A DNA stretch of 64,000 nucleotides from Adineta vaga (lineage: Eukaryota; Animalia; Rotifera). Location of the stretch: assembly GCA_021613535.1 (NCBI GenBank), contig CP075497.1:930001-994000 (forward strand), in the 5' to 3' direction. The notes under the pieces are model-generated. The model was not told where the DNA came from and did no database searches. It saw only the letters and a list, made by a program, of their open reading frames with translations. The stretch's first letter is position 1. Each line of letters opens with the position of its first letter. The position numbers and the translations under genes were made by a program. Shown here piece by piece: positions 602-61,773 of this stretch.

Positions 602-663
602 TTAAGGGTGTGAGGTGTGGTTCGGTTTAGAGTACAGTCTGACCCACATTCTCACCCTCACCC
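602..663. repeat. Telomere-repeat inverted element (TIE) copy 1
   Basis: ttaagggtgtgaggtgtgg...acccacattctcaccctcaccc. Confidence 0.75.
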
Positions 664-1120
664 AGACGTTTGCATAAGGCTCTCCCTACAGTCGAGGGAA
701 TTTCAATCAATTGTGTCCTTCGCTTATTTTTCATTGTTCAACTCATCAGAAACAAAAAAATTTTGAACAAAAGATATGTACGTAATAAACTTATTCTTAA
801 TTAGATTTATTGTAGAAGACATTAAAATGCACGAAAATAGAAAGGTTTTATTCAACTTATTTTATCCACAGAAACAAAAATCACTAGTCAAAGTAACTTC
901 TTTTTTTTCTTTCATAAACTCTTTAAACTATGTGATTTACGTCAAAGAGAAAAAAACATTTTTCTTAACATCAAAATGTTTCTCTAAAGAAAAAATAATA
1001 GTTTTTATAGAATATTTATTGCATCTAGATTTTATTTAATATTCGATTCAATAATCATCTGCAAATATTTGTTTTCGCTGATATTGGTCAATTTAATCAT
1101 TCAATAGTTGTCAATTTCAA

Positions 1121-1797
1121 ATGATAGCAGCCGATGAAAGATCAATTAATATCCAAGAGTATTTAAATGCTAGACATCAACAAATGAATGATAAATCTGT
1201 GAAGAGTCTCGTCGGACGTATTATAATTAAATAAAGATGAAAAGTATTATCTGATCATGAAGATTATGTATCAGCATGTAATAGTTTAGGCAATGTGTTC
1301 TATGGCAAACGACAATTGAATGAAGAGTTGGAGATATTTGATTTAATTTATGAAGATCAGAATGTGGTAGAATTTAGTGAAATATTGTTAACAAAATATT
1401 AGAATAATTTACTTGTGACTTGTCTTTTGAAAAATTTGGGTGATCACATACTTAATCATTCCTATTGGCTATGCAACATGTTTGATGATGCATTAAGTTA
1501 TCAATTCAAAGCATTAAATAAACAACAAAGAATTTCATATGGAGAACAATCGCAAACTTTTTTATCGTTAGAAAATACCGGCAGTCTTTATTACAATCTA
1601 CAAAAATGACAAGAAGCTATAGATTATTTCGAAGAAGTGAAGACTATCTTAATATTAAATATTCAAATCAATAAGAACTACATTGAAGAGATAGACAATC
1701 TCATAACTGTTGCGAAACGAAAAGAAAGCACAGGATCTGATGTGAACACAAATTGTTGTCAATCAAATGAAAAGAGAAAATATCACAATATACAATA
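1121..1797 (+). pseudogene. Degraded TPR-repeat protein relic
   Basis: Fragments YVSACNSLGNVFYGKRQLNEELEIF, FDDALSYQFKALNKQQR and SLENTGSLYYNLQK*QEAIDYFEE are TPR-like. Multiple stops and frameshifts. Confidence 0.6.
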
Positions 1798-1911
1798 ATA
1801 TGTTAAACGTTGGAAATGTTTCAAAGACAGAGTCTTTAATTGCCCTTAACTGATTGCACATCTATTATATTTTGCATTGGCAGATATAGTGTTAGCTGCT
1901 TTACTTGTGTT

Positions 1912-2919
1912 TCATTTTCCAAGAAGTACATTGATTTCATCGAATTCTTTCTTCAAAGAGACACCTTCTATGTCGCAATAGCGACCATATAGTTTTTCTG
2001 CCCAAGAAAGTCGACGATGAACAGCTGCAATATGTGACGGAGAACTTTTCAGGATATACTTACCAACAGCAACATGATAATCAGCAATATCACGTATCAA
2101 ACGAACGAACAGATCTTCATAAAAATCAAATACTTGAATATTATTTCTATAATTAAATGCCCAATCTAGTTGCTCTCCATCGTTTTCACGAAACACATAA
2201 ATTGACAAATGAAATCCATATGTCAATAGATCAGTGAATATTTCTCGAAATTTCTCGAGAATCAATGGTACAGCTAATTTTGCCATGATGTTTGATGTGA
2301 TGAAAAAGATGCATTTATTTTTGTTTTGATCAAAGCATCCCAGACAATCTGTAATGCTTGAGAATACTTCTAATACACATGTTACAGCAGCAACCGTCAT
2401 AGACAAAGTATAATTTGTATAAAAGCTTTTTGCTGGTTGATTTTTGCTTTTAATTTCCGATATGAATGAAAAAGCATTTTTCAAATTATCATACTGTTGT
2501 TGCTCTTCAATTTTTCGATCAAGCCAAATAATCATGTGATCTGAATCTTCACTGCGTAGAATTGAATCATGTCGAATCTTCTCTAAATGAAATAACATGG
2601 GAATTCTGATTACTAACTTCAGAAAAGTCGATATATATTTTTATTTATTTTCGAATGTGTACTTACTCGAGATATACGGTGATAAAGTCAAGCGATTTTT
2701 CCCACCATAAATCCAAACAATCTGATCTCCATCTTGAATATTTCTGTCTCTAAATGTATCAGAAAAGCGATATATGAGACCACCAAAAAAAAGTTGCTGG
2801 CAGTCGGGTGGGACACCTGTTGCATGGTAGATTTGTTCTTTGAAACTTTCAAATGTGTCTGACGGTTCAACTTGAAATGGCATGTAAATGTTGTCGATCG
2901 ATTTAAGAACAACCTTCAT
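1912..2919 (-). CDS. Ubiquitin-like domain (with GG) spliced to a bdelloid-type alpha/beta (IIWLD) domain
   Basis: Ubl: VEPSDTFESFKEQIYHATGVPPDCQQLFFGG...IQDGDQIVWIYGG. A 54-nt intron at 2666-2613 (GTAAGT...TTAG, phase 1) joins it in frame to ORF 1912-2598. Confidence 0.7.
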
Positions 2920-3181
2920 CTTGTTTAGTACTCTCACCTAAAAAGCGAATGAAAGTACCTCTGAATGAAGATAAAATTTGAAATACGCATATTTTTTATA
3001 CTTCATCATTTAGTTGGAAATTTTCTCGCATTGACACGTGGTTTTTTTTTCATTCAATACACTCACATTGCTATGACGAGGGTCAAATTATTTACGTAAG
3101 GAAGCAAGAGAATCGACGAATCAACGATTTTACAACCCATGTAAAATTTTTTTCGAAATTTAACGATTTCACAAAACAACA

Positions 3182-3889: not shown

Positions 3890-3945
3890 TAAGGGTGTGG
3901 GTGTCATTATTGAATCACCATCACCTAGACCCATCTACTCATTTC
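3890..3945. repeat. TIE copy 2 (degenerate right arm)
   Basis: taagggtgtgggtgtc...caccatcacctagacccatctactc. Confidence 0.6.
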
Positions 3946-4062: not shown

Positions 4063-4145
4063 ATTTTCTAGTTCAAGTGGTTAAGGTGTTGCGCTTAGGA
4101 CGCAATTCACGAAAGTGTGTATGGGTCCGATTCTCATTTCTGGCA
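4063..4145 (+). pseudogene. tRNA-Leu(UAG) pseudogene
   Basis: Anticodon arm ttgcg-cttagga-cgcaa and a long variable arm like that of the neighbouring tRNA-Leu. The 5' acceptor strand is destroyed and the T-loop reads GTCCGA. Confidence 0.7.
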
Positions 4146-4219
4146 ATCTTTTTCATTTTTGAAATGATCGAGAATGAAGTTGAGTTCTGTTCACGAATAA
4201 GTGCGGCTTTATGCCATAT

Positions 4220-4302
4220 ACCAGGGTGGCCGAGTGGTTATGGCGTTGCACTCAAGATGCAATTCACGAAAGTGAGCATGGGTTCGATTCCCATTCCTGG
4301 TA
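4220..4302 (+). tRNA. tRNA-Leu(CAA)
   Basis: Acceptor accaggg/tcctggt, D-loop with GG, anticodon arm ttgca-ctCAAga-tgcaa, long variable arm, GGTTCGATTCC, downstream oligo-T terminator. Confidence 0.92.
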
Positions 4303-4430
4303 AATTAATTTTTTTATGTGCCGTTTTCAGGATACATAATGTTTGTAATTTTATTTTCGTTGCATTTCTATTTGCACAAGGTAGTGAACTCAAAGCATTT
4401 GTAGAAAATAAGTTTGTCTTGATTTGAATA

Positions 4431-4478
4431 TGCGGGTGTGGGTGGGTGTCTTTCTCTTACCCACACGCTCACCCTTAA
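4431..4478. repeat. TIE copy 3
   Basis: tgcgggtgtgggtgggtgtc-tttctctt-acccacacgctcacccttaa. Confidence 0.8.
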
Positions 4479-5834: not shown

Positions 5835-6287
5835 TTGAAAGTTCTTTTCTCTTGATAGAATTATTTTGAAATGTTTTGTTAGATAAAAAAGAAATAACAA
5901 GACTTGAGAAAAATCTATTGAGTCATTCTCAATGATTATCGGTTCAGAGAGAAGCAGAATGCAAGAAAAAACTAGTATAAATATGATTACGGCAGGTAAT
6001 GTCGACAGAATTCAGCAAGATATTTCTTCTCTTTCTCAACAGAATGAAATTACAAAATCGAAATGAATTAATGGATTTCTCTTGTTTGCACTGTTTCACC
6101 TATTGAATAAAACACATGTAGACTATGATTCAGTCATAACGTAGATTGTAGTATGTCAGCACTATTAAATGTACGAAAACTATCATTCGGCGAGACTACA
6201 TTTTTTGATTTTTTTTTTGTTTAGCGAAATATCATTTTATTATAATCATCTCATGGTTCTTCTACGAAGTCAAACTCGCCACCATTT

Positions 6288-6436
6288 TTTCATGGACAAC
6301 CGGTAGATCCAACGAATAATATGACTTATTGGATTGGTTGGATTCAAGATGCAGAAGAAACTCTGTTCATTGGTGAACGATTCCAATTATCAATCAAAAT
6401 TCCGACAGATTATCTATTTAAGGCACCGAAAGTGAA
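6288..6436 (+). pseudogene. Ubiquitin-conjugating enzyme E2 fragment truncated at TIE copy 4
   Basis: QPVDPTNNMTYWIGWIQDAEETLFIGERFQLSIKIPTDYLFKAPKVK matches the E2 core (W...I.GP..T.Y.GG.F.L.I.FP.DYPF.PPKV). The following F.T.IYHPN/catalytic Cys segment is absent. Confidence 0.8.
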
Positions 6437-6497
6437 ATCTTAAGAGTGTGGGTGAAGAGAACAATATTAATCACACCCACACCCACACCCTCCAGAT
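6437..6497. repeat. TIE copy 4
   Basis: atcttaagagtgtgggtga-agagaacaatattaa-tcacacccacacccacaccctccagat. Confidence 0.85.
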
Positions 6498-7105: not shown

Positions 7106-7157
7106 TAGGGTATAGGCGTGGGTACCACATCTATCTAACACCCACACTCACCCACCC
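7106..7157. repeat. TIE copy 5
   Basis: tagggtataggcgtgggt...acacccacactcacccaccc. Confidence 0.7.
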
Positions 7158-7433
7158 GAATTATTATATATACTCTTTTGTTGAATTGTTTTTATTTTTC
7201 ATTCATTATTGTCTATTTTTTGTTTGAAAAGAGAAAACTAAGTAGAATGCTATGCAACCGACATGTTAAAGACAATTAACCACTGACTGTCAATAAAAAA
7301 AGATAGAGAAAGAATAAGACAATTTTCTCTTTTCATATGAAAACCATTTTAATTTTTCACTAAATTTTATTCTATAATCTAGATTAAAAAATTCTTGTAA
7401 AATTTATTCATCGGATTGTTATCATTCAGATGA

Positions 7434-8266
7434 TTAGACGCATTCGCAGATAATATCTCTTGCCAATCCTGATTTGACCATTCGAGTAAATTCAGGTAAG
7501 TTGATTTGGCCAGATCCATCTGTGTCAGCCAGAAAAACACAAAGATCAACACGATACTAAAACAAACAATGATTAAAGTCAAATAAACTCAACTTTTCAA
7601 TTAAATTAAAAGTTACTTCATCGGTAAGAATTGACAAAAAGGCTCGTAATTCATCAGGTGAAATCAGACCATCCGATAGACTGCTTGTTCGGTTGTAGAG
7701 ACCTCTTCTGCCTTGGTCGAGAATGTCGAAGACGCGTGCAATATCGGATTCTTGTTCCTGATTATTGCCTAACATGAATACTTGCAAGACTTGTAAGAAA
7801 TCATCCCATGCCAATTTCGGAACTGATGAAGAAACACTTGCTACAATAGAATGAGTAAACAAAAGATTACATAAGTAATATACTTTTAAGAATAAATTAT
7901 CCTAACCTCGTTGGTACTCTTCTTGGGTTATTGTACGAGAATGAATAGTTGCGCCGTCTTCGATCAATTCAACAGTAACACTTGTAATTTGACCATCAAC
8001 AACTTGCGCCTTATATTTAGCAGTTCTAATCGACCACATTGTTGTTGCAGGAAAGGAGAAGTTTGCTATTTATTTAATACAATTCAACCTGAAGAAATGA
8101 CATGAATGGACTTACTTGGTCTCACGAATTTCCGATAAAGTTTCATACCAGGAGTATCTAATGTTTTTAACAAGCAAACAAGGCAACTAACTACGATATG
8201 TAATGAAAATGGTATACTCACAATCAGATGGAAGTAGACCATATTGAGAGAAATCAAATAATCCAT
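7434..8266 (-). CDS. Multi-exon EF-hand (calmodulin-like) protein with hydrophobic N-terminus
   Basis: Exons give IARVFDILDQG...DGLISPDELRAFLSIL and ADTDGSGQINLPEFTRMVKSG...CECV* (canonical EF loop). Short GT-AG introns. Confidence 0.7.
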
Positions 8267-8485
8267 GTCGTCGAATAGATCTACTGCTTATGTATTGCTT
8301 ATCTATTTTAATATCATAATATGAAATCGAGTAAAAGTCTTGTAATATTGACTACAAGCGATAAATAATGTTCAACTAACTCGTTTTAGATTTCAGAGTA
8401 TGTGCACACTAGATTGAACAGCTATACGTATACTTCTTATCAGTTTTTCTTCTTCAATTTTATACTTTCGAAGTTGATTTTTACA

Positions 8486-8566
8486 GATGAGGCTGTGTGG
8501 ATGGGTCTGGGTCTGGGTAAGGTAGAAAGCAATAAAGACACCTCACACCCACCCACACCCCTCGTC
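8486..8566. repeat. TIE copy 6
   Basis: gatgaggctgtgtggatgggtctgggtctgggt...acacctcacacccacccacacccctcgtc. Confidence 0.75.
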
Positions 8567-8619
8567 GACCTTTCCTGAGATCTGGGGAAACACATCGTGG
8601 ACACTTTCGTGACTATAGC

Positions 8620-10156
8620 TATCTCAGGGACTGAATGCATGACGAACAGACAAATAACAATATTTTTCAGATATATACATGTGTCGAAATCTGGAAGCTT
8701 TGGTGAAGAATAGAATATAGAAATTACAAAAGAGTCTTACCCTGCACATGTCTGTCTCTATTTGATAGTTCATAATCGATGGCATTTTCGCGTATGTTCG
8801 AATATGTTAATGCTGGTGTAGACTAATAAAAAATTTTATTAGATATTTGTGACAATTATTTGGAACAAAATTACCAGATCTTCAAAAACGCCAGCATTAC
8901 GAGCCACTTTAATAAGTGTCGCTGAATCTAAAAGTGAATCTCCATAACGAGCTGCATAAAGAGCAGGATCTTCGCTGAAAACACCTTCTTTTTCAAATTG
9001 ACGAACTACATGTGGTTCAACACGTTCATAAATAATGATCTTATTCCGTGGTGCTGGATGTTCTATATCAGCAGCCGAAGCCTCTTCAACAATTGTGCGA
9101 CGTTCAGGTAAAGGTCCATAAGGAAGCCATCGTTCAATGATAATATCACCTAAATCGTAAGAAAACAACAATACCAAAAGTGAAAATAATTCTTTTTACG
9201 TGGTTTTTCCGGAGCAGGGGGAAAACGTTCGATGATAACTGATCGTGGTGGAGGAGGCAGAGCAGGTAGCTGACGAATAACTACAAAATGAAATACATTG
9301 AATGATCTCTTATATATGTGTGTAATTTAAGTTTATTGTTTTTTTAACCTGTTTCACTAGGAATAGCTAGTGGTGGTGTTGGCGGTCGCTCACGTAAGAT
9401 AAGTGGAGGTGGTGCAACAGCAGCTTGCATATATTGACGTATGGTAAGTGGTGGAAGTGGTGCTGGTTGAGGTGCACGCACTTGTTTGATAATGAGTGGC
9501 TAAAATCATACAAAGGTTAGTAAAATTGCATCTAAAAATATTCGTTTGATTACTCCTGGTGGGCGAACAGCTGGTGGTTGAAGATATCGAACAAGAACTC
9601 GCTGTCGATATGTTATCGGTTTGTCCGTTATTGCTTTTCGAATAATTAATGGATTACGATCCCTATAAATATTAACTGCTCGTTCTAGATATCCATTGGT
9701 CTCTTCCAAACTATTTGTTTCAATCACCGATTCATTTGTCCAATCATTAGCTACTGTTACAGTTCCGTGTGTACCATATATGTTTCGTTGCGATCGTCTA
9801 ATATTATCACCAGTAAGGTAAACCTCACTTGCCGATGTTTCATAATTGCTTCGATTCAATCGGCTATCAGTAGTATTATGAAGATACACGCCACTAGTCG
9901 ATGTTTCATAATTGGTTCGATTCAATCGGCCACCACTAGCATCACGAAGATACACGTCACTAGCCGATGTTTCATACGTTGTCGAAGATTTTCCTTCATT
10001 ATTGGAAGCCCATTTTTGAAATTCATCTTTATCAATTCTATATATATATATATGTATAAACTTATTATTGTGACAAAAAATTTTTGATTCTTACTTTCCG
10101 TCGTGATTTGTATCAATTTCTTCAAATGAACTATTAGTTTCAACAATTTCTGGCAT
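8620..10156 (-). CDS. Multi-exon protein with N-terminal EF-hand, 22-aa repeats and proline-rich PPPLI.RERPP/IIERWLPY region
   Basis: MPEIVETNSSFEEIDTNHDGK|IDKDEFQKW EF loop spans an intron. Exons RYLQPPAVRPPG|PLIIKQVRAPQP..PPPLILRERPP and DIIIERWLPYGP follow. 3' end uncertain. Confidence 0.7.
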
Positions 10157-11297
10157 TTTCCCAAAAAAGACAAAGCACAAATAAATTCTTAAAATAAAAG
10201 AAATGAATAATTACTAATTAATATATTTCTAATAAAAATATCATTCACACCCATTCGGTTGGCTCAAATGGCTACAAATGGTTAAATATGGTCTAAGAAT
10301 AGCTCGGCGATGCATGTGGTCTGTTATTTTTGGAGTGATTTCCGAACAAAAGCAAATACAGACCTGTGGTTGTTAGCATTTCTTAAAGCACATATGACTT
10401 CATCTATTCATGAATGATGGCTCGAAAAAATCGCAATCTTGAGCAGTCTATGTAAAAGGTTTTAGATCCTTTTTCTCTTAATTCTCATAGATATCTGTAT
10501 ACATATATATAATGCATCCAAAAGATAGTCTAGATGACTCCTTGAAATGTACCTCAGAATTACCATGCTGAATTATTTTCTTCACGAATTATAAGATTTC
10601 TACTGGTAGTCCAAACTTAGATCAGTTGATCTTACTTTGCTGAAAAATAGCTCTAAATTAGGGATTCCAATAAAATGCCTATGATTCGCGAAGAAAATAT
10701 TTTAACATGGTCTACTTCACATACATTAGAAGAGGACATGTTGAATTGACTATCTTTTAAATGTATCATACACGCAAACGTCTACCAGGATTAAACGAAA
10801 AACAAGCGTAGCTTTTAACAATCTTATACTATGAAATAATTTCTACTGGCTCTCTCGAAAATGTAAATCTGACAATACTGTTTCATCCGATTCTTTCTAT
10901 ATATATATATACAGAGAGAGAGATCGATAGATATATTTTTCCCTTGAAAAACATGTCAATATGGATTTTTTCCCTCGGTATGTAAAGTATTTAAATCTTC
11001 AAACATCGTTTACAACAGGGGATCATATAATGAGAAAGCAATATATATTATATGGATGCAAGAGGTAATGTATATTCTTTATGTACTATCTTAAAGTAGA
11101 AGATGTGATTATAGCTACCGTGATCATAATTTCGTTGTTGCTGAAGGGCTCTTCAGATAAATATTTTTTTATTGTTTGATGTGGTTCGAAATGCACACGC
11201 CATAATGTTTGTGGTTATATTGGCTTAATCAGAGAGGAGAAAAGAGGAATAAACTCCATCTTCATCAAAATTCTGGTTGCGCCAGTATGTGATGATC

Positions 11298-11390
11298 TTG
11301 TATCTTGAGGGTGTGGGTGTGGGTGTGGGTGATTTTCATCCGTTTATCCAAACATCCTCACCCATCCACACCCACACCCTCAAGATGCAA
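11298..11390. repeat. TIE copy 7 (best-preserved)
   Basis: ttgtatcttgagggtgtgggtgtgggtgtgggtga - 25 nt - tcacccatccacacccacaccctcaagatgcaa. Contains a 21-bp perfect inverted repeat, atcttgagggtgtgggtgtgg. Confidence 0.95.
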
Positions 11391-19394: not shown

Positions 19395-19461
19395 TCTTGA
19401 GGATGTGAGTTTATGGGAATGAGCCTGCCCTTAGCTCACGCCCACACCCGCACCCTCAAGA
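19395..19461. repeat. TIE copy 8
   Basis: tcttgaggatgtgagtttatggg...ctcacgcccacacccgcaccctcaaga. Confidence 0.8.
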
Positions 19462-21411
19462 TGCACGCAATTCCGATTCTAGAATTGGTATTGGGATTAG
19501 TTGGAATCGGATTTAGTACATCTCTATTTCTGACTGATTTCTTTTGCTTCACTAATTGGTAGACGCGGCTGAACACGATTAGTTAGTATTATATTAACGT
19601 ATCGTTCCGTTTTTTTCTCTCGTGATAGCAACGTCTGTTAGTAACATTTTTCTCTTTCTTTGAGAAAAGTAGACGATGGTTTGCTCCTTTTTTTACAGAG
19701 AAAAAGAAAGTAAAACAGACGAAGGGACTAATAGCTTTCATATTGCATGTTTCACTGCATTTATTCTTCGTTATTATTCTACACTGATTTTTCCCTGACA
19801 CACGGTATCGAATAATTCAACTATTCTTGGTCGTCGCATAGTGTATCAAAGTGAGTGAATATTTCGTTAGTATATGCACATTGTTTCAAAAGACTTAATC
19901 GTAGACTAATTTTCTATAATATATATATCGTTAATAAACTGGTTCTTTCCAAATTTCCCCGGAGTATACAGTAGCGCTTCTTTAGCACATCTAAGTTCTT
20001 CAGTTCCAGCCTGAAAGGAGTGTTGAAGTATAGGGCAGAAAATTTGGACCCCCACAGACCGCGAGCGATATAGTATCAAAGACTGTAATGGGCATTGGAT
20101 TACACAAAATATAAATATAAAACTTTAAGCTTAGCAGATTTATTATTTAAATGTCAACAGCTATATTGTGTTTCACATTTTAATCCTGCAGGGATTGCGC
20201 TAACAACTTGTTTTATATATGGTGCAGAGAGTTATCAACAAGTAATTTCAATTGCCAGAAACGTTCATAAGAAATTTCAAATTGTCTTCTTCACATTTTA
20301 AGAGTTTTCTGGTAGTACCAGTTATAAGTCAATCTACATATCCCACTATGAAGGACACAGAAAATCTGCTAAATTGAGATCATTGAATTTTGTTTAGTTT
20401 ATAATATGTTGCAAAGGGAAGATTCTTTTATGAATTTTTGCTCAAGCCACTTTAAAAATTATAGAATTGTTCATTTTTTTAAGCGTTTAATGGAAGAAAT
20501 GTACTAAAGATCCACTTTTAAGGGTCCTATTTTTTATACGACAGTTGCAGAATTCAGAATTTGATATGCTTCCCATCAAGAATCTTCTCGGTTGGTAAAT
20601 TCATTGTTAGACGTTTTCATAAATTGCTAACAAAAACTACCGCTTCTATGTTTATTAAAACGGCTTCTGTCAAATTGATAAAACTCTTCATTCCACAGGA
20701 CGTTATAAACTGAAGTGGATGTGAAGGCTTTGATCGAGGTGGCTTTCTAGGTTCTTAGCAGTGGTTGAATGGGATTATTCACAGAGAGTACGCCCATGTA
20801 ATTCTTAAAAATTTGCAGATGCTATCATCAAGAAACTCTGGAAAAGCTATTCTTATAAACATTGTATCTTTGCCTCACGATCTTAACAATAAAAATGTGC
20901 TACTTATACTCAGTTTATTATGAGGACTCGAATATTACCATTTTCATCCTAACTAAACTAGTCAGATGAGGAAAATAAGTCGGTTCCAGAACTTTTCCCT
21001 CTTCTTGGTTGTATATTTGATACTATTTTGTTAGGACTAAAGAGCAATAATTCATGTGCCTGGTAGAATATCAAAACCTGCTCAATAACAGTACTAGTCA
21101 AATACTTAAAGCCAAATTTTACTGAAACATAAAGCAATGAGAAACTATTTTCGACTGTCCCAGAACTTTCTATCAGGGCTGTAGTTTTGAGTATCGCATC
21201 AAGAATGTGTTCTAGAAAATGTGTCGAACGGTTGTTTAGATGTGACATGAATAATACAACATAGGACTTTTTATGCTACATTCTTCAAGAGAATGTTAAT
21301 TACTTCATCTTTTATTATTATTGTTATTAGGGTCATAGCTAAATAGACAAGAGGATTACGGATAAAGAACTCAATCAAGAAATCAAATATCAATTTTATA
21401 CGCATTTACTA

Positions 21412-23141: not shown

Positions 23142-23200
23142 TGAGGGTGAGTGAGAATGTGGGTGAAGAATAGAGTATTAGCCACCCACAACCACAAGAT
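23142..23200. repeat. TIE copy 9
   Basis: tgagggtgagtgagaatgtgggtga...gccacccacaaccacaagat. Confidence 0.7.
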
Positions 23201-23445
23201 GGTGAAGTTCAAAAGTCATCTTCATCAGCAGTTACACCAGCGAATACAACATTCAATCCGATATTTGTTAAAATCCTAAGCAAAAACACTCCACAAAAAG
23301 TACTAATTGATACAGGATCGGCCATCACAATAATTCATAAACGCATACTATACAAGATCCCATACAAACAATTTATACCGCGAACAAAAAATCATGTATA
23401 AGCAAGTTGCTCAGCAGCGAACGTCAAAGTTAATGGAATTACATG
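23198..23445 (+). mobile_element. LTR-retrotransposon aspartic protease (retropepsin) relic
   Basis: NPIFVKILSKNTPQKVLIDTGSAITIIHKRIL contains the retropepsin LIDTGS catalytic motif. In-frame stop downstream. Confidence 0.7.
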
Positions 23446-25777: not shown

Positions 25778-25995
25778 AACTTCTACTTCCCTACGAAGAC
25801 ATTTTTTTGCCATTAATAATTCAGATTTCGGTTGAAAGTTTTATTCTCTTTGAATTCTCTAATAAATTCATTTAAAAAAGGTGTCACATTCAGAAATCGA
25901 ATTTCAAATTACGAGACAATAATCACTCACCACAAACCAACGTTCTCATCCTCCAGATGGTTAATAAAATAATATTTTCAAATAATTTATATATC

Positions 25996-26068
25996 ATGAA
26001 GGGTGGGTGAGGATACGAATAAAAAGCACACCTACCCTTACCCACACCCACACCCACAACCTTTCCAT
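25996..26068. repeat. TIE copy 10
   Basis: atgaagggtgggtgagg...cacacctacccttacccacacccacacccacaacctttccat. Confidence 0.8.
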
Positions 26069-26277
26069 TCCATCATTTGCGATTGTATGAAGTGAACACA
26101 ATTTTCGAAGAAAAATATGCAATATATTATGAACATCAGAAAACCTTTTTATTTCAAAGAAATTTAAATACACTATCTGAAAAATCACCCTTAGATCAAG
26201 GACAAAACACATCACAAATAGCTTACGAACATGTTCTTCTTTTCATAAACTCATCGACATTCTCACGCTCAATATGT

Positions 26278-27473: not shown

Positions 27474-27512
27474 TAAGGGTGAGGGTGAAATATCGAATGA
27501 AATGCATCCTTG
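27474..27512. repeat. TIE copy 11 (short, degenerate)
   Basis: taagggtgagggtga...tgcatccttga. Confidence 0.45.
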
Positions 27513-27896: not shown

Positions 27897-27980
27897 TTGA
27901 GGGTGTGGGTGTGGTTGTATGTGTGTGAGAGAAAATGATTATACACCCACACCTACATCCACACCCACATCCACACCCTC
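27897..27980. repeat. TIE copy 12
   Basis: ttgagggtgtgggtgtggttgtatgtgtgtga...tacacccacacctacatccacacccacatccacaccctc. Confidence 0.9.
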
Positions 27981-30435: not shown

Positions 30436-30528
30436 GCAAGTTCAACTACCAAATTTTCTTTTATTAGAACTTTGATTTTTATTTTCAAATCTTCTCTTTT
30501 TTCTTCATATATATACTAATATATATAA

Positions 30529-30598
30529 TCGAGAGTAGGGTGGGTGGGTATGGGTCTCGATTCTTTATATCAACCCACACCCACACCCACACCCTCAA
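30529..30598. repeat. TIE copy 13
   Basis: tcgagagtagggtgggtgggtatgggt-ctcgattctttatatca-acccacacccacacccacaccctcaa. Confidence 0.9.
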
Positions 30599-30875: not shown

Positions 30876-30938
30876 TTGAGGGTGTGGGTGTGGGTGATAG
30901 TTTACAAATAACTCTCACACACTCACACCCACCCTTAA
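30876..30938. repeat. TIE copy 14
   Basis: ttgagggtgtgggtgtgggtga-tagtttacaaataactc-tcacacactcacacccacccttaa. Confidence 0.9.
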
Positions 30939-32080: not shown

Positions 32081-32342
32081 CAGAGATGGACAAGTCAGCG
32101 ATTTTTTGCCTCAAATCAAGTCAAGTCAAGTCACATTAAAATTGATTGATTGGGAAGCCATATAACCTATGAAAACTGAAAAAAACTTCCAACGGATCCG
32201 AATCTTGTCTTTATTTCAAGATTCATCTATTCTGAGGAAATAATTATTGATGTTAGTTATATTTTCCTGTTATATTTTGAACCAGAAAGCAAAATTGAAG
32301 TGCATAAAAGATTTTTACGCGATATATTTTTGGACTTGACTT
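32081..32342. mobile_element. MITE (CAG-starting TIR, hAT-like) truncated on the right
   Basis: Left end cagagatggacaagtc...tcaagtcaagtcaagtca. The complementary gacttgactt begins at ~32333 and is cut off by telomere-type repeats. Confidence 0.6.
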
Positions 32343-32367
32343 AAGGGTGGGTGTGGGTATGAGTGAG
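32341..32367. repeat. TIE left half (copy 15)
   Basis: ttaagggtgggtgtgggtatgagtgag; no C-rich arm nearby. Confidence 0.75.
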
Positions 32368-33054
32368 AAAAAAAATTCGAATCGTTTTCTTGTATATAAA
32401 GTTTCTAGATCTATTTGTCTTAGTATTGATATGCGCAAAAAATACCTCTGTTCCACAGTCGAGGGTAAAGTTAGTTGTAGCGACGAGAGTTACTTATTTT
32501 ATTTCTTCTAGTAGCAGCCATATATTTTATTTCTTTCTTGACTGTTCGTCTTCATGGTAAAAGTATACACGCAGGTATTGGACTGTATATGTATCCTTTG
32601 AAATAAAAGAATAAACAACAAACAGATATGATCATGACGATCAAGACAAGACATACCAATTTGAATGCAATAATTCACTAAAGTTTTTAAACCGATATCT
32701 TCTACCATACTAATCAGACGTCTTCCAAAACATATCCATTCACTTAATAGATTGGTTAGTTGATGTTTTGTTTGTCAAGATTCTCAGTATTAACTGTTTT
32801 AGATGTGGTGGATTTTTCCGCTGATAATTTCAACGTAGATTGACCTTTAGTAGCTCCTATTATGGACATTTATGGTTCGAAAATGTCGTTGTTGTCGCAG
32901 AATAACCATACGTATAAAAACACTTCTTGCATGACGCAAACTTGTTGATGTTTTGATATTTATCGGGTCCTAATATCTTTGCTAGTAAGCCAAATGTAGA
33001 CCAACATGACGCATTTGAATTTTTTTATATTTCAAACAAATGGCGATACTATTT

Positions 33055-34101: not shown

Positions 34102-34381
34102 AAATAGTATTCTTGCCAGTGTTATAGTGTGGGTGGGTGCAAGAGGAAGGCGAAGGTAACGATAAAGATGCTACTACGGAGGGTTCTCAGACAGCATCAT
34201 CCATTTCAATCTTGAACTGAAAGTTTTGGCTAAAGTGGTTCAATTGGAACTTTAACTGAAACTATGTGTTTGAAATGAATTCAAGTATCAAGTTTAGAAT
34301 AACTGAATAGTTAAATAATTGAATGGTTGAGTAATTGAATAGTTGAATAGTTGAATTAAACTTTCAATTGCGACGTTACTA

Positions 34382-38113: not shown

Positions 38114-38185
38114 TCCGCGGTAGTATAGTGGTGAGTATCCCCGCCTGTCACGCGGGAAACCGGGGTTCGATTCCCCGCCGCGGAG
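38114..38185 (+). tRNA. tRNA-Asp(GUC)
   Basis: Acceptor tccgcgg/ccgcgga, anticodon arm cccgc-ctGTCac-gcggg, GGTTCGATTCC, oligo-T downstream. Confidence 0.95.
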
Positions 38186-38310: not shown

Positions 38311-38382
38311 AGCAGCGTGGCGCAGTGGAAGCGTGCTGGGCTCATAACTCAGAGGTCGGTAGATCGAAACTACTCGCTGCTA
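38311..38382 (+). tRNA. initiator tRNA-Met(CAU)
   Basis: A1-U72 pair, TGGCGCAGTGGAAGCG D arm, CAT anticodon, GATCGAAA T-loop typical of eukaryotic initiators. One G-C pair of the anticodon stem is G-U. Confidence 0.88.
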
Positions 38383-38961: not shown

Positions 38962-39017
38962 TCTTGAAGGTGTGGATGTGACTGATGATCTTCTTCTGCC
39001 TTTAACCCACATCCTCA
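38962..39017. repeat. TIE copy 17
   Basis: tcttgaaggtgtggatgtga...aacccacatcctca. Confidence 0.65.
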
Positions 39018-40128: not shown

Positions 40129-40146
40129 GCACCCACACCCACCCCA
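40129..40146. repeat. TIE right arm (copy 18)
   Basis: gcacccacacccacccca, with a residual agggt at 40101. Confidence 0.6.
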
Positions 40147-45299: not shown

Positions 45300-45336
45300 C
45301 GGATGTGAGTGAGAATTAGAAGAACACCCACACCCA
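45300..45336. repeat. TIE copy 19
   Basis: cggatgtgagtga-gaattagaaga-acacccacaccca. Confidence 0.6.
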
Positions 45337-45393
45337 GCTTTATTTCTTAAGCATAAAGTAGAATAATTAACAGGCATTGAATAGATGAATTTT

Positions 45394-48300: not shown

Positions 48301-51300
48301 TATTGTAGTGCGTAAACGTTTAATTAGATTCAATATAATTCTTTTCGATCTATCAAGAAAATTAAGACGAACTAGAATGAAAATATTTTTTTCGAAATTC
48401 TATATTCCTATTTTAAGAAACGTCGGTTCTATTAATAAATAGTTACCTTCTGTTTTTTGGTTTGTTTTTCTTTTGAATATTTTCAAGAAGTTCAAAGATA
48501 AATTAACAAGATAAGGTGTTAAAATACGTAATGAAACGACAATACCACCAAGCATCGACACCAATGTTATAATTACTCCGATAAAAGTCGTCTTGCGAAT
48601 TTTTTGAGAATAAGAACAATATAATGGTGCACAAGATTTATAGAATAGTTCATACGATAAGACAGGATTCCATTGTTCAATCATCAATTCTTCGATGATT
48701 ATTGAAAACGATGTGTTTGGAGGATATCGACTCGCAGTTGGATCATAAACGAGAGGTTGTAGATTAAATGATGATGAAAAATCTAAGAAATATTCATCTC
48801 CATTGTCTAAATAGCTTAACACAATTGGAAAACAATCTGAATCTTTATATAAACATTGAAATGTCGAGAATAGAAGTGAATCCATAGCAAGACAACCTTG
48901 AAACCAACCGTCTATATTATAGATAGAACGTGCCGTTTGAATAAATGCTGGAATTTTACAATGTGGATTTATGACACAGTTACATTTGCCTAATGATGAA
49001 TTCCTTTCTGGAATTTCATTTAACATAAATTGAAACTATAAGGAAAATGATTTACATTTATTTTTAATTTCAATCCTATTCTTTCTTAAATCCATATCGA
49101 TAAGATAATTACAGACGTTAAAAGCAAATCAATTGAACATACTTGTGCTGTTTTATGATTATTTGTTTTATTTATCACTATATTCAAGTTCAAACCGAAT
49201 TGATTATCATGTGTTAACAGTGTCATATATCCCTTGTAAAATTGATCAACTTGCATAATAAGACTCACAATATCTTTTTGAAAACTAAAATTGTCAACTG
49301 TTGAATAATAAAATTGATTGAGAGTTGCATTAAGTTGTTTAATAAAATTCATTTCATTCATCATAGAAGAAGCAATGAAGAATTGATTAAGAAATTGATC
49401 GATCGCATCAACAATCGTTTTGTTAGCTAATTGACAAAGATCAGATAAGATTTGAAATTGTGAATATGCTTGACTACGCCAATCATTAGAACTAATGTAC
49501 CATGCATTGCTCTTTATTATTTCAATCCAACTATTATGAACGAAACTACTTGAACATATTTGATGAAAAATTGGAGAAAAAAATAGAAAGTTTTTATAAG
49601 ATATTGTTTTATTTGAACATGGACATCGAAGTGCTGATAAATTTTTAATTTCTAATGAACTATAAGTTTTCAGTGTAGGATTTCGTTCATATTTTGTTAC
49701 TGTTTCATTGCGTAATGATGTGAATAGACAGAGAGCAAATGTTGAACCTAATATTTCAAAGAAAAATAAAAATCCTTCATATATAATTCATAAAAAATTT
49801 ACCAAATAATAAAATGAAATAAACACGAGTAATAATTCGTTGCTGTCTGATATCATTTTCTGTTCGATGATGTATATTTTTGAATAAATTTAATTTCTTT
49901 ATTGATTTTATTATTTTAAATACTTTTGTAATTAGATGATTTAAATTAATTTTTAATTTAAATAATATATGAATAGAATATGATGCAATTAAATGAAGTA
50001 TAATTGTAAGACCACCACAAAGACTAATAAATAGAGTTATAGAAGAAGATAAATTTATTCCACCTTTTATTGTATATGTACACATGGATGGTGAACATTG
50101 ACTAAAATATGATAAATAATCGATTTCTAATGACCAATTTTCAATGAAAAAACGATTTAAATAATTAATTATAGAGATATTTTTGTAGCCTGATGATAAA
50201 ATTGAATTATTCAAATTATTATATGTCTAAATATAATAATAAAAAAAATTATTAAATCTAAAAATAACATTATCATACAAACTTGATTTAGATTTGGAAA
50301 ATATTTCAATAATAATTGAATACAATTGAAATCATAAAAACAATCTAATGTACCTGCAAGAAGTGATTCAAGAGGAGTTAATCCTACAAAAAAACCTTTG
50401 ACAATTGTAAAATTGGGCATTGGTCTGATTCTAGATCTACGTAGGAGATGTTTAATATCCTCTGAGAATGAAGAGAAAGTAGCTGAGATCATTGAATGTC
50501 TGATGACGTATCCTTGATTAGTTTCATTTTCATCTACAGTTACAGTCGTTACACGAATTCTGAACCTTTTGTTATTTATGTTGTCTACTTCAATTATCCA
50601 ATTGGTACTGAGACCTGTGACTAAATAATGTCCTTGAATTGTTCTTCTCAAATAATTCAAGAATGACATTACTTGAACAGATGCACTGTCTTTTTGTAAT
50701 TCAAGAATATCATCTACTTCTTTTTGAATTTTCATCCCAGCAATAAGTTCAATAGAAATCAAATCAGTATTGTCAATAGTTTTACGAATTTGATTAATGA
50801 TTTCATTTGAAAGTAAATTAAATTTGGATAGAAGTTTAAACTAAATTAACAAAAAAGAAAAACATGTATAAAAAAAATATAATATTAACTCACCTGTGAA
50901 TAAGCTGTTGTTCGAAAATCCCATACACCAAACTCACTTGCATTTGCAAAATATAAACCTTCAATCCATTGTTTATCAATAAAAATACTTGAACATATAG
51001 GATGCATTGTGATTTTGTGTGTAACAAAACTTTTATACGGTATTGTTATTGTTTTACATGGACATGAAAGAGTTTGTCCATGATCAGAAGATAGTTTATT
51101 AAAAAGATCAGGTGTTATATTGGAAATAACAACCGTTTTCGGTTCAATTTTTATCAAAGTAACATAAAACAATATATAAAGGCATACTAAAATAAGTTTA
51201 AAAAAACTCAGTCGTTTATGATGCAAATGATATTTTGTACAAAAAAACATATTCGATGTTATATACCTGTACGAAGTGTAATGTACAACCAAGTTTTATA

Positions 51301-52785: not shown

Positions 52786-52863
52786 AAGGGAGTAAGTGAG
52801 AGGGTATGAGTAGACGTTAGTGTGAATAATCTAAAGAGAAGATCTCACAATCACACGCTCAAG
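52786..52863. repeat. TIE copy 20 (highly degenerate)
   Basis: aagggagtaagtgagagggtatgagt...tctcacaatcacacgctcaag. Confidence 0.45.
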
Positions 52864-54130: not shown

Positions 54131-54168
<38 letters not shown>

Positions 54169-56440: not shown

Positions 56441-59400
56441 TTATTCATTAGGGGTAATTGTATTTCTTCGACATTTCTTTCGAATTTGAAATATTATTTT
56501 AATTATAAATGGAATTGTAAATCGTAAAGCAATTGTTAATCCTCCACATAAACCTAACACTTTTGATATTGTATAGATAATATAATCATCTTTTTTAGTT
56601 TTATAAGAACAATAAATTGGAGCACATTGATTATAAAATGATGAATAAGATATCTCATGGTTCCATTCTTCAACAAATAATTCATCGGCTATATTTTGAA
56701 TAAATGTATTGATTTTAAAATGATTTTCATTTGAAAAATTCATAGCAGACATATTTATTCGATAAGGAAATGTTGATAATTCACTTGTCAAATAAAATAT
56801 TAATAAATCAATACATGTTTGATTATATAAACATTCAAATGTTGAACTTAATAATGTTTCTACAACTGAACAACCAATATTCCATCCAGGCATTACAAAT
56901 ATTTGTGTATCACTAAAATCTTCATAAATTCCTCCTGAATCAATACAATCACTTCTTGTTGCACATGAACATCCATCTTTCATTAGAACTGGTTTAATAG
57001 GAAATGTAATAAAATTATCTTTTACATCTTTCCACCAATACCAATTTAAAGAATAAGATGATATAAAAGCATTTCCATTGATAATATCACGTAGAAGTTT
57101 TAAACTTTTAGAGAATTTTTCTAAAGTAACATTTCGAAATTGTAAAATAATCGAATCAATTTGAGTTTCAAGTTCAGATTTTGTTATCAATTGAGTATTA
57201 ATAAATATATCATTATGAAATTGATCAAGAGAATTATTTATTGTTTTTTCAGATATTTGACATAAAGATGAAAGAAATGAAAAATAAACCGAACCACGTA
57301 CACGAATATCACGTCGATCATAACCACTCCAATATTTATCAAGAAATAAATAATTACGCCATTTTTCACTAATAAAATCACTTGAACATATTGGATGAAA
57401 TTTTGTTTCTATTTGAAGAAAAGAATTATATTCGATTGATATTTTCTTACAAGGACAATAAAGTGATTTTGAATAAGATATTAATAAATTGTTATATTCA
57501 GTTTGAGAAGGATTTGAAATAGATACACGTACAATTATGTTCAAAGCAATTGTATAGAAGATTATAACACAAATAGAAATTGAAAAAAATACTAAATAAA
57601 ATCTTGTTGATATTCGTTCACGATAGTTTGTATCAGTATCATTTGATTCACTATCAAATAAATTTAACATCAAAAATTCATCTTTTATTCGATTGATTAG
57701 ATTTAAGATAACATTGCAAATTCCATCATTTTCTAAATAATTATAATCATATCAAATTATGTTTAACCTTCTAATTTGACTTCAAATATAAATGATGATT
57801 TTCAAAAAGTGTTTTCTATAGTCATTATTTTTGATGGATAAAGATTTAGACTTTGTTACTCATAAATAAAGTCATATATGTGAAAGATTTTGAATTATAA
57901 TCAATGATGAACAAAATAAAACTATTCCTATTCTATAGAAAAACTTTAACTCAAGTTTCGTGATTTATTTTTCAAAATGATATCAAATAGTTGAATGTGC
58001 ATTTATATTCGAATTCAAAATAAGGAATCTCATGCGAATAACTTACGATGATTTTTTTGTTGTATAATTGAAAGTTTTGATGATCTAGTTTGTCTTAGTA
58101 GAGCAATAAGTTTGAGAATAATTTTGATAATAAATGGAGAAATAAATTTAAGTATAGTATTAATTCCACCAATAAGACTGAGAATAACTGTGATAATGTA
58201 AATAATATTAATTTCTTTTTCATAAGTAAAAGAACAAGATGAAGGTTTACATTTATGATAATATTTGTCAAATGAATAAGAAAAATTCCATTCTTCAATC
58301 ATCATTTCATTAAAAATTCTTTCAATTAATGTCGATGGAGAATATCGACTAGATAATGTTGAATTAAGTGGAATTATAGAAAGAGGTATTGTAATACCTA
58401 TTCCATTAAGAATCTCTCGCAATCGAATTAAACAACTATCTTTAAACCAACATATCATTGATGATTTTAATACAGAATCAATAATGGAACAACCACCATG
58501 TATTCCTTCAAGTTGCCAATTAGTATGTAATATCTCTTTATTTTGAGTTATTTTATAATCTAAACTACATGTTGAATCAACAATACAATCACATTCATTA
58601 CCATTTGTATTTAAACCAGATTGAGGATACACCACAATATGTATATATGTTGGTACATTATTAATTGAATGTAATATTAAATCAAGATAAGTATTGATTT
58701 GAATATTACTTATATATTGATTACTATGAAGTAATATATTAGTTAAAGACATTCTATAGAGAAATTCAGTTTGTGTTAATGTTGCAAATGTATTATTCAA
58801 TGAAATAACTCGTAAAATAAATGAATCATTCGATAAAAGTTGAGAATTAACAAAATTTGTTGCTGAAAATCTTTGAATTGCATCTTTTATTGTTTTATTT
58901 GTAATCTCACAAAATATTGATAATGTTTGAAAATATGATGGAGCTAATGATAAAAATTTCTTTTTTATATCAGAACTATACATCGGAAGAAAACTTTGAT
59001 ACCACCATGATTGAATAAAATCACTTGAACATATTTGATGATAATTTACTTCAATATTTAGAAAATCTTCATAAGGGATAGATATTTGAGTACATGGACA
59101 TATTAATGTTGATGAATATCTTTTTTCTAATTCTTCATATTCTTGTAGAGATGGATTTGAAATTTTTTCATTAATTCTTTGAGTTAAAAAGTCTGCTAAT
59201 AAAATAATAATACATATTGAAATAAACATTGAAATAATATAGAATCGTGTTGCTAAAAGACCATGATAAATACGAATTGGATCACGAGAATATTTAATAT
59301 ACAAATTAAAATTCACTATTTTATTTTCAATTTCTTTCAACAATTTAATTAAACGAATTTGAATTGTTTCATCTAGAAAAGATTAATTTTTATTCGATAT

Positions 59401-60784
59401 TTTATCTTTTTTAAATTTTACTTTGAGATTGTTTAATTTCTTGTATTTGTTTTGAACAGAATCGTTTTTTTAAAAAGAAAAATAATTGAATAATAAATGG
59501 AGAAATTACACGTAATATTGTTGTTATTCCTCCAAAAAGACCAATAAACATAGTTAGAATATAAATCCCATTGAAACGATTTAAATAAATATAATAACAA
59601 ATATTTGGTAAACATTGTAAATAATATTTTGTATAATTTGTTTGATTAAGAATATTTTCAATAAAAAGTTCATTAATAAGTAATTCAATTTTTGTTGTTA
59701 TATTAAAACGAGTTGATAATGATTGATTAAGAATTGAAATATTGATTTGAGTTGAATAAGATGAAAGAAGAATATTTAAACATGATGGATTATAAAAACA
59801 TTCTAATGATGATGATAATGTCATTTGAATTGGTAAACAATCAATTATTATACCAGATAAACTTTCATTTATTTCAATTTTATTCATATCATAAATTCCA
59901 AATTTTTCAGATATATTATATAAATAAAGATTACCAGGTAAAGGACATGAAACATTATTTTTACAAGAACAAATTATTGTAGAATTTTTTGGTATATATT
60001 TGTTTCCAGAGATTCCAATATAACTAGATATATTTTTAGTGGGAGAGACAAAAAGCAGATGAGATGATTGTGTTAAACCAAATTTCTCTGTTACAACAAT
60101 ATAATTTGTTAATAATCCTGTTACTAATTCATTTGCTTGAGTTATTCTTTGAATGATTGTTCTCGATTGTATAAAATTCGATGATATTGTTTGAAATAAT
60201 AAATTTAGAGCAGCTTGAACTTTTGCTTCTAATAATTCTTCATTTAATAACATTGAAGTAATTAAATGAGAATTATTAAATTGATGAAGTGCATTTAGAA
60301 CTGTCGTTTGTGCATTTTGACAAAATGTTTTCATTAATTGCCACATTGCACTTAGACTTGTTCGAACATCTATTGGCGAAATTAATGTTGAATCTGCTTT
60401 AAAGATAAAATCAATCCATTGTTGGGAAATAAAATCACTTGAACACACTTGATGAAATGATGGAATTGTTTGAACAAATTTTTCATAAGGAATTAAAACT
60501 TTTGTACATGTACATTGTAAATTATTAGGATATTTTTTTAGAAGATCTTTATAAACAGATTGTGTTGGAAATGATACAGTTATTGTTTCATTTTGTTGAT
60601 TAAGTGAAGCGTATGTTGTTAAAATAATAAGAGAAATAATAACAAGAATAATATATAGACGAGTTGATAAGATCTCGCGACGAATAATCAATGGATCTGT
60701 TGTTCGAGAATCAAAAACATTCCATGTAATCCATTTTTCACGTACACTTTTATATAAAGATGACAATAACACTCTTATAGACAT
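56441..60784 (-). CDS. Three-exon membrane protein with exactly three tandem TM-Cys-rich loop-TM modules (one per exon)
   Basis: ORFs 59411-60784, 58030-59343 and 56441-57673 are mutually homologous. They are joined in frame by phase-1 introns (..QSQ a|at ETIQ; ..NH c|aa NDGIC). Confidence 0.85.
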
Positions 60785-61404
60785 ATGACAATAGTTTTCT
60801 AAAATATAACTTTTTTCAAGATTTGATCAAATATACAACGGGAAGAAAACGATCTGTTTTTCAACATTTTCATAACGATCTATTAACTTATGAAAACTTA
60901 TTAGATATTTATTTTACGCAAAAAAAAGATTTAAGGAATAATACGAAATAGTTTTTCGAAAGTTTATCAGTAAAGTTGAGTTTTCGATTTAATTCTCAGT
61001 GACTAATTAAGGTAAAGTAAAAAAAAAGAAACCTAAAAAATAATTATAAATGAATAGGAGATTTTCATACACATGATTGTTTTTTATCAAATGAATGAAA
61101 ATATTTCATGATCGACAAAGCCTTACCTTCGCAAATAGTCAATATATAATAAAGAAATAGTATGTATGCTACCGAACAAAAATACTTATTTAAATAATAA
61201 CAATATTCGCCTATATATTTAAATCAATATGAAATATCTGTTAGATCTTTTCTAACAAACATCACATTGAAATCAGTCAAATAAATACAACGAACGCGCT
61301 TCCTTTTTGTTAAAGATTAGTGTGATACAAAATGTTACCAGATGTCAGTTAGTTTCTAATTGTATATACGGAGCGCATGATATAAATATTGTAATTCTTT
61401 AAGT

Positions 61405-61510
61405 AGGATGCGGAAGCAAAATATTTCAGTCGAAATTTAGTGTGATTTTTGATAAAAAAAACATTGAAAATCAGGATCCTTGAAGGAAACACGAATTTCC
61501 TGAAAAGAAA
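61405..61510 (+). repeat. Dispersed repeat, homologous to 55420-55525
   Basis: aaaacattgaaaatcaggatccttgaaggaaacacgaatttcc. Confidence 0.65.
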
Positions 61511-61719
61511 AAAAAGGATAATATGGAAATAAAGGCTTTTAAGACAACATTTTATCTGACGATAATTTGAAATAAAATAAAAGCAGATTGAATTAATTGA
61601 ATGTTCAATGAACATCTTCCAAATAAATCAAACTTTTTTCTTATTTTATTCTTCATCTAAACTCAAAAACAGAAGATGCTTTGAATATGGATGTGAATGA
61701 GATGAACCATTATGACCGA

Positions 61720-61773
61720 TTGAGGGTGTAGGTGAAGAAGAGATACCTTGATCCACACCCACGCTCACATCCT
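61720..61773. repeat. TIE copy 21
   Basis: ttgagggtgtaggtga...atccacacccacgctcacatcct. Confidence 0.8.

Follow-up and report, generated by a model that had tools for sequence, protein, structure and literature searches.

Introduction

Bdelloid subtelomeres gather foreign genes, transposons and rearrangements, and the elements described here may bear on how fragments are joined there after massive breakage. The closest described system is that of the Athena/Terminon elements, Penelope-like retroelements that lack an endonuclease and reside at bdelloid telomeres. They prime on exposed 3′ ends and capture host genes between units (PMC6431247, PMC3846280), and at their 3′ end a hammerhead precedes telomeric repeats in reverse complement, which pair with G-rich overhangs (PMC6431247, PMC8557442). 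Here we describe a family of short hairpin elements from the bdelloid Adineta vaga (chromosome-level assembly: PMC8494291), in which two arms of telomere-like repeat face each other around a short centre. They were examined in a 64,000-nt stretch of chromosome 6 (C6:930001-994000, hereafter the window) and genome-wide. The family is real, abundant and enriched in subtelomeres. We tentatively read its members as junction modules from template-directed repair, in which the core spreads as a unit, primed by microhomology, through an Athena/Terminon- or telomerase-related activity; with the same reserve, we take them to be neither ordinary transposon insertions nor plain telomere-telomere fusions.

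The hairpin elements resemble Athena/Terminon 3′ ends in having C-rich reverse-complement telomeric repeats by a DNA end, in their subtelomeric enrichment and in the junction ..CACCCACACCCTCAAGAT^flank (^ marks a boundary throughout). Unlike Terminons, they contain no open reading frame (ORF) or hammerhead, measure 50–90 bp and carry centres that differ from the Terminon tails examined; moreover, Terminon tracts are co-oriented, whereas the hairpin arms are inverted (42 inverted versus 3 direct). Internal repeats, borders of rearranged blocks and head-to-head order are also features of the human 2q13 fusion relic and of the (TTAGGG)n islands at subtelomeric duplicon borders. The hairpins differ from human interstitial telomeric sequences in their hundreds of copies, their 1–5 repeats per arm, their family centre, their start motif and their shared cores, and their centres recur with constant phase, unlike the arbitrary junction of a unique event that a fusion relic would show.

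Foldback elements and miniature inverted-repeat transposable elements (MITEs) likewise have inverted arms of variable subrepeat number and a variable centre, are non-coding and are associated with rearrangements, but the hairpins have no target-site duplication, no sharp termini and no known transposase partner, and their arms consist of the host telomere repeat. Break repair mediated by reverse transcriptase, and endonuclease-independent insertion of long interspersed element 1 (LINE-1) at breaks or dysfunctional telomeres, share with the hairpins the lack of target-site duplications, the junction microhomology and the flank deletions; in contrast to LINE-1, the proposed template here is a tiny palindromic telomere-repeat unit with its own lineage, and the reverse transcriptase is a presumed one. 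Integron attC sites and bacterial REPINs are also short imperfect inverted repeats with a variable centre that lie between gene-sized segments, but the hairpins have no conserved fold, no recombinase was seen, the host is eukaryotic and the junctions are fuzzy and not site-specific.

In the literature searched, bdelloid interstitial telomeric repeats appear only as TGTGGG hexamer counts or as sequence capping truncated Athena copies. Rotifer hairpins made of inverted telomere repeats were undescribed in this literature, whose coverage was without the main Terminon (2017) and Athena (2007) papers. Relative to it, the inverted-repeat family, its start motif and its centre families are new, and an earlier mention is possible.

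Results

Head-to-head telomere repeats in the window and in the genome

A first-pass annotation of the window had reported about 21 elements, about 15 of them clear. We confirmed telomere-like G and/or C runs at all 21 positions, with two arms at 15, one arm at 4 and degenerate copies at 2, and added two further features, a C-arm remnant (25924-25960) and a G run (34127-34139), which brings the window to about 15 full, 5 half and 3 degenerate elements. The bdelloid (A. vaga) source inferred from the sequence is also correct. The unit follows the consensus (ACCATC)TTGAGGG(TGTGGG)n - centre - (CCCACA)nCCCTCAA(GATGGT), and nine window matches to TTGAGGGTGTGGG at ≤1 mismatch compare with a chance expectation of 0.01. 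Elements in the window are intergenic, lying between ORFs at a density of about one per gene. The window itself is ~0.93–0.99 Mb from one end of chromosome 6, which places it in the subtelomeric zone.

Genome-wide searches covered 100.8 Mb in six contigs (C1-C6); the resulting counts are lower bounds, from exact patterns, and direct sequence reading covered ~260 kb. With the strict pattern TTGAGGGTGTGGG-N10-60-CCCACACCCTCAA, arms stood in G-then-C order at 42 sites, in G-then-G (head-to-tail) order at 3, all of them neighbouring elements, and in C-then-G order at none; mirrored control patterns gave 0 sites. The G arm had been reported to come first on the + strand, which is true but holds on either strand of any palindrome. 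What makes the arrangement meaningful is the genome-wide contrast of 42 against 0, not the order on the + strand, and the two orders are, as anticipated, not equally frequent: these are head-to-head telomeric arrays in which only G-then-C order occurs. A looser two-arm pattern matched 93 sites, and terminal inverted repeats were found in ~15 window copies and 42–93 strict genomic copies. The single arm end CACCCTCAAGATGG occurred 256 times genome-wide (control 0), and 40 of the 48 listed chromosome-1 matches (~83%) lay ≤3 Mb from an end. A gap of 8–38 nt between GAGGG and CCCTC gave 0 matches, the arms being too long for it; wider patterns match.

The centres, which the first-pass annotation had taken for unique, non-conserved spacers, instead fall into recurring, related families that can occur in either orientation. 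Family C (..TGAAGAAGAGATA..) is the commonest; the others are family A (..TTAAGAGTATAGTCTGA..), family B (..TATTAGATAGATGTAG..) and family D (..GTAGAAAGCAATAAAGA..). The elements and remnants of the window are:

602..666, full, degenerate; family A centre (TTTAGAGTACAGTCTGA)
3890..3940, G arm, with the C half decayed
4431..4478, full; outer end CCCTTAA
6437..6498, full; truncates an E2 (UBC) gene just before the HPN motif
7106..7157, full; family B centre; left boundary of block 7159-11308
8486..8563, full; family D centre (GTAGAAAGCAATAAAGA)
11300..11388, full, near-perfect; DNA fold −31.4 kcal/mol; right boundary of block 7159-11308
19395..19464, full; canonical ends TCTTGAGG...CCCTCAAGATGC
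23142..23202, full; C arm short
25924..25960, old C-arm remnant, end ..CCTCCAGATGG; C1:12.66 Mb homology stops at its outer edge
25996..26061, full; left border of a 4.8 kb stretch without counterpart in the C1 paralog
27474..27493, half element, G arm only
27897..27980, full; C arm long, irregular
30531..30598, full; right border of the 4.8 kb stretch
30876..30938, full; C1 homology ends at AGCTT^GAGGG, where C1 reads AGCTT^TAGCTG
32341..32375, G arm only, then a purine-rich tail
34127..34139, short G run; start of a block common to the window and C1
34382..34408, C arm only; junction ACTA^ACACCCTCAC..; next 537 bp absent from the C1 paralog
38962..39017, full, degenerate; identical in the C1 paralog (97% identity)
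40129..40145, C arm only; also in the C1 paralog
45301..45338, full, short
52786..52863, strongly decayed candidate, weak
61720..61772, full; family C centre (GAAGAAGAGATAC); fold z −1.45

Outer motif, arms and centres

The outer end had been described as a fixed TTGAGGG. Conservation in fact reaches further out, to about ACCATCTTGAGGG, but it fades outward without a sharp edge and is partly supplied by the flank. In a set of 80 flanks, T stood at −1 in 80%, at −2 in 72% and at −4 in 58%, while A occupied −5 in 52%, beyond which composition was at background; on the C side, the base after ..AAGATG was G in 46% and the next two were GT in 29% (100 listed sites), and the base after ..ATGG was T in 18 of 30. 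The outer motif extends over 0–8 nt per end, and its extents at the two ends of one element are uncorrelated (r = −0.07). In agreement with the first-pass annotation, no target-site duplication beyond chance was found in 35 elements, 24 of which had no flanking direct repeat at all, and the distribution equalled that of shuffled partners.

Arm repeats are irregular and unequal in number (TGTGGG, TGGG, TGAGGG, TGCGGG), with 1–5 per arm and 50–90 bp for the whole unit. All-against-all BLAST of 61 loci confined similarity to this 50–90 bp unit, and we rejected the idea that it is part of a larger repeat. Among 30 canonical C ends, an upstream G arm was clear in ~20, weak in 6 and absent in 4.

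In centres delimited by the last GGG and first CCC, 86% of G/C pairs have the G ahead of the C, compared with 50% in shuffles (maximum 60% in 2000); the left half of each element is thus poor in C and the right half poor in G. Family A boundaries keep a constant phase at unrelated loci (GGGT^TAAGAG...GTCTGA^C(C/T)CAC), and the boundary phase of family C is ...GATA(TA)^CC(C)ACA. Such constancy at unrelated loci implies that cores were inherited or copied as units and did not arise by independent fusions. One element, at C1:17474397-17474439, carries centres of two families back to back (..TGAAGAAGAAATACC TTAATCCACATCTATC..), which shows that two-tailed elements occur beside the usual one-tailed form.

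Folded as single-stranded DNA, the most stable element scored −31.4 kcal/mol (z −8.6) and the least stable −7.9 kcal/mol (z −1.45), a spread which shows that folded structure is not maintained. The suggestion of attC-like sites has no support in this range of z, and no conserved structure or recombinase link was seen. An Rfam scan of the window returned only three tRNAs, with no hairpin family and no hammerhead. Two other identities were considered and rejected. An introner or start-codon role does not fit, since the ATG of ..CAAGATG opens no reading frames and elements lie between ORFs; nor does a Helitron 3′ end, the outer sequence being a symmetric palindrome (..ATCTTGAGGG / CCCTCAAGAT..) with no CTRR.

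Elements at the borders of paralogous blocks

The window is a patchwork of segments whose paralogs lie elsewhere in the genome. Positions 7159-11308 match a repeated region at C5:586-661 kb (82–90% identity), 1-620 match C3:18.07 Mb, 6279-6441 match C2:1.38 Mb, and 23794-44644 are collinear with C1:12.66 Mb (83–100% identity within blocks). Eight of 16 homology-block ends lay ≤5 nt from an element, compared with 0.45 expected (P < 5e-5), and six of 16 did so without the two features that were added after seeing block ends (25924, 34127).

Individual junctions show what happens at these borders. At element 6437, an E2 gene fragment (6279-6437) ends in ..FKAPKVK, before its HPN/Cys core; the window reads AAATCTT^AAGAGTGTGGG, versus AAATTTT^GTACAC in the intact paralog at C2:1.3786-1.3789 Mb. 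The 4.8 kb stretch (25961-30743) holds four elements and a P450 gene, in place of which C1 has 160 bp with one element. At the one-armed junction 34382 (ACTA^ACACCCTCAC..), C1 is without the 537 bp that follow. The centre of element 8486 is common to two C5 paralogs (L041 and L043), in which both flank junctions differ and flank deletions abut the arms; a third C5 paralog (L042) has neither the element nor ~200 bp of flank. Element 11300 shares its inner arms and centre with L043; the outer C arm, the CCCTCAAGATG and the right flank of the window copy differ from the paralog, and on the left the window is without 125 bp present in the C5 paralog. Element 602 has its left flank and G arm in common with the C3:18.066 Mb paralog, homology stopping at the centre. 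Element 38962 is identical in the 97%-identical C1 copy, which indicates passive duplication of elements as well.

In five paralog comparisons, the flank gives letters of the outer motif in register with the consensus (TT^GAGGG, TTGA^GGG twice, ATCTT^AAGAG and TAAG^GG). The compared sequences are:

AGCTT^GAGGG in the element copy; AGCTT^TAGCTG in the uninterrupted copy
ATATTGA^GGGTG in the element copy (8486 comparison); ATATTGA(C/G)TAC uninterrupted
TAT(C)TTGA^GGGTG in the element copy (11300 comparison); TATATTGA^AAATG uninterrupted
AAATCTT^AAGAG in the element copy (E2 junction); AAATTTT^GTACAC uninterrupted
AAATAAG^GGTGTGGG in the C1 element; AAATAAG^AAGAG in the window, uninterrupted

Judged from these alignments, microhomology between a DNA end and a template 5′-(CCCACA)nCCCTCAAGATGGT-3′ would produce both the fading of the motif and the flank-supplied letters. 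Microhomology-mediated deletion beside an existing element would produce the same letters, and a transposase would not.

Athena/Terminon ends and the chromosome terminus

Pattern and Rfam searches located 41 hammerhead-bearing Athena/Terminon 3′ ends in the genome. At three Terminon ends, the C-rich stretch meets chromosomal DNA at ..CACCCACACCCTCAAGAT^, ..CACACCCTCAAGAG^ and ..CACACCCTCA^, and this junction start equals the start of the hairpin arms (CCCTCAAGAT / CCCTCAAGAG / CCCTCA). By this sequence likeness, the common start is a shared feature of mechanism and no proof of membership. The only true terminal array examined, which opens contig C4, has an irregular repeat pattern with TGAGGG variants and begins ..AATTGAATGA^GTGTGGG. 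With the same start in hairpin arms, Terminon ends and the C4 telomere, end extension appears to begin in the same register in all three. The source template may be telomerase RNA, the 3′ end of Athena-type RNAs or the hairpin's own RNA. No telomerase RNA gene emerged from the 30 CACCCTCAAGATGG loci compared, which have no shared downstream sequence.

We rejected the possibility that the centre is complementary DNA of a Terminon tail, as the 41 hammerhead-bearing ends carry other tails (ATGGTAGC.. and similar). There was no hammerhead upstream of family B centres; family D partly resembles the tail of one Terminon type (that of L064) and is the only family to do so.

Some arrangements of Athena/Terminon and telomeric sequence were seen in passing. 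At the tip of C4 (C4:1-3000), an irregular C-strand array of ~125 bp is separated by ~2.4 kb from a long inward G-strand array, which abuts an antisense Terminon hammerhead at ~2692-2753; with arrays on both sides, a segment flanked by telomere tracts sits at the chromosome tip. Solo, strongly 5′-truncated Athena/Terminon 3′ ends (hammerhead, tail and 1–3 C-rich repeats) adjoin paralogs of window 7205-8411 at C3:19.5168 and 17.4988 Mb (L044/L045) and at two further loci (L063, L064), the last of which has two tandem hammerhead copies ~200 bp apart.

Independent DNA and other bdelloids

Contigs of a 2013 DNA run cross the elements at 25996, 30531 and 30876, which excludes an artefact of long-read assembly, and a 151-nt contig of run X3 crosses the element at 27897. 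Further canonical copies (..ATCTTGAGGGTGTGGG...CCCACACCCTCAAGAT..) lie in two environmental contigs from one metagenome; on both counts the elements' reality, as claimed in the first-pass annotation, stands. One of the metagenome contigs (L070) has no DNA match in the A. vaga genome, a sign of a different source organism. The second encodes a protein that shares 74% identity with proteins of A. vaga and A. steineri. This contig at least thus stems from a different bdelloid, and the element together with its outer motif therefore occurs outside A. vaga.

Candidate RNA-run contigs were few and uninformative; they neither begin nor finish at elements, and the runs are not on record as RNA. One run guessed to be RNA (X2) yielded a 2,039-nt contig with a word depth of 367 that carries, at another locus, a ~140-nt related element, a longer relative of window 27895-27978; if X2 is truly RNA, some elements are highly transcribed. 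The 2013 DNA run also holds a 27-nt insertion allele (TCGCGGTTGAGAATGTGCCGCAACACG) at 27460, directly before the one-armed element 27474, and in L070 (1240-1464) a canonical element adjoins a LINE-type reverse transcriptase fragment (..FYLDFKSAFDRI..).

Discussion

In the repair reading that we tentatively favour, a resected 3′ break end would pair by a few bases with a template 5′-(CCCACA)nCCCUCAAGAUGGU-3′. An RNA copied from an existing element is the likeliest template; telomerase RNA or a different genomic copy is less likely. An Athena- or telomerase-type reverse transcriptase would copy the arm, the centre and the inverted arm, and the new 3′ end would be joined to the second break end, again via microhomology. 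The break ends could be of different origin, in which case the patch would mark segment borders, and existing elements may rebreak at or in their arms, so that the core would be re-used while flanks are deleted or replaced. A templated patch would account for the inverted geometry, for heritable centres in either orientation and for fuzzy, independent ends without target-site duplication, as well as for flank deletions, junctions of unrelated segments, subtelomeric enrichment and a start common with Terminons; cores that persist with changed flanks would follow from later breakage at or within the arms.

Several points weigh against this reading. The RNA-type contigs, few and uninformative, gave no direct sign of an RNA intermediate or a specific polymerase, and no clean filled/empty pair differing by the element alone was found among the paralogs compared; because L042 is also without ~200 bp of flank, deletion is an equally good reading of that locus. 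In-register microhomology would also arise from microhomology-mediated deletions beside a pre-existing element. The arms are irregular and unequal, as at the C4 telomere, and telomerase could produce such arms. The centre families are unlike the Terminon tails examined, with no hammerhead before family B, and the Athena/Terminon literature may already hold a description of the hairpins. A bolder form of the proposal, which we consider doubtful, would make the element a self-propagating non-coding "break patch", a ~70-nt palindromic RNA-templated element of telomere repeat that reverse transcriptase, primed by microhomology, copies across double-strand breaks in bdelloid rotifers. Equally doubtful is its corollary that the 3′ end of such a patch imitates the end at which Athena/Terminon primes, or the template of telomerase, and that the patch stitches together unrelated fragments, among them duplicated and possibly foreign DNA, with a dated scar at every junction.

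Among the three roles put forward by the first-pass annotation, scars of rejoined capped ends come closest to the evidence and are partly supported. The position at block ends, the gene truncation, the one-armed junctions and a start like that at Terminons and, roughly, at the telomere all agree with them, but family-specific centres of constant phase, ends that are paired in about two thirds or more of cases and a flank-supplied outer end do not. In their simplest form, de novo scars would arise in independent events, each arm being an end healed by telomerase or by abortive Athena priming, after which two such ends, or a healed end and a plain one, are joined head to head. One-armed junctions do occur (34382, ACTA^ACACCC..), 4 of 30 canonical ends have no partner, and two paralogs with a common flank and G arm diverge at the centre. 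The unequal, irregular arms resemble the C4 terminal array, which also begins ..TGA^GTGTGGG, and the same start motif stands at Terminon 3′ junctions. In A. vaga lines, moreover, telomeric repeats and Athena fragments have been found at deletion breakpoints (2026 Sci Adv, PMC13564844), and the telomeric repeats there fit healing of this kind. Yet independent fusions would not recreate recurring constant-phase centre families at unrelated loci, random joining should mostly meet plain DNA whereas most canonical ends are paired, and two G-rich 3′ tails are non-complementary, so that an extra joining step is required. We consider independent healing and fusion rather unlikely.

Less probable still is a non-autonomous MITE or miniature foldback transposon whose terminal inverted repeats are telomere-like subrepeats and whose ends were blurred by microhomology-mediated deletions. 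Inverted arms, centre sub-families, hundreds of dispersed and mostly intergenic copies and homology restricted to the 50–90 bp unit would all suit such a transposon, and arms of variable subrepeat number recall the foldback elements of Drosophila. What it leaves unexplained is the absence of target-site duplications beyond chance, the lack of sharp termini with uncorrelated left and right completeness, the outer motif letters that come from the flank, and the location of elements at block borders and at a truncated gene where the other flank is unrelated; no transposase-bearing partner was noticed in a search that was not exhaustive. A functional cis-element, be it a boundary or terminator site bound by a telomere protein, a recombination site or a hairpin RNA gene, seems very improbable. 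The intergenic density of about one per gene in the window, the motif conserved in another bdelloid and the very stable folds of some copies are what it would lead one to expect, but fold stability is not maintained (z −8.6 to −1.45), arms are unequal, junctions shift between paralogs, copies are concentrated in subtelomeres rather than spread genome-wide, no Rfam family matches and one element truncates a gene. The boundary-element role in particular looks unlikely, since genes are truncated, junctions vary and copies are restricted to subtelomeres.

If the elements are scars of junctions, with a recognisable start motif and heritable cores, they form a sequence-level record of ends that were healed and joined. 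Every such junction could then be mapped and dated by its decay, and it could be asked whether such junctions flank horizontally acquired genes. The start motif (..ACCATCTT^GAGGGTGTGGG) predicts the template sequence of end extension, whether that template lies in telomerase RNA or at an Athena-type 3′ end; within the literature searched, it is not defined for rotifers. Should telomerase supply the start motif, the expected template region would be 5′-CCCACACCCUCAAGAUGGU-3′, and an RNA of the element, if it exists, would be expected to measure ~60–90 nt with ends ACCAUCUU...AAGAUGGU.

Other features of the window

A tRNA-Leu(CAA) and, 157 bp upstream of it, a tRNA-like copy of 78% similarity (4076-4161, 4219-4303) lie between elements 3890 and 4431, and tRNA-Asp(GTC) and tRNA-Met(CAT) (38114-38185; 38311-38382) lie ~600 bp upstream of element 38962. 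Between 50978 and 60577 there are four copies of a 150-nt coding repeat (61–71% identity), carried by tandem long minus-strand ORFs at 56444-60826 and by one ORF at 50888-51295. Minus-strand ORFs with FG-GAP repeats are found at 45397-46512.

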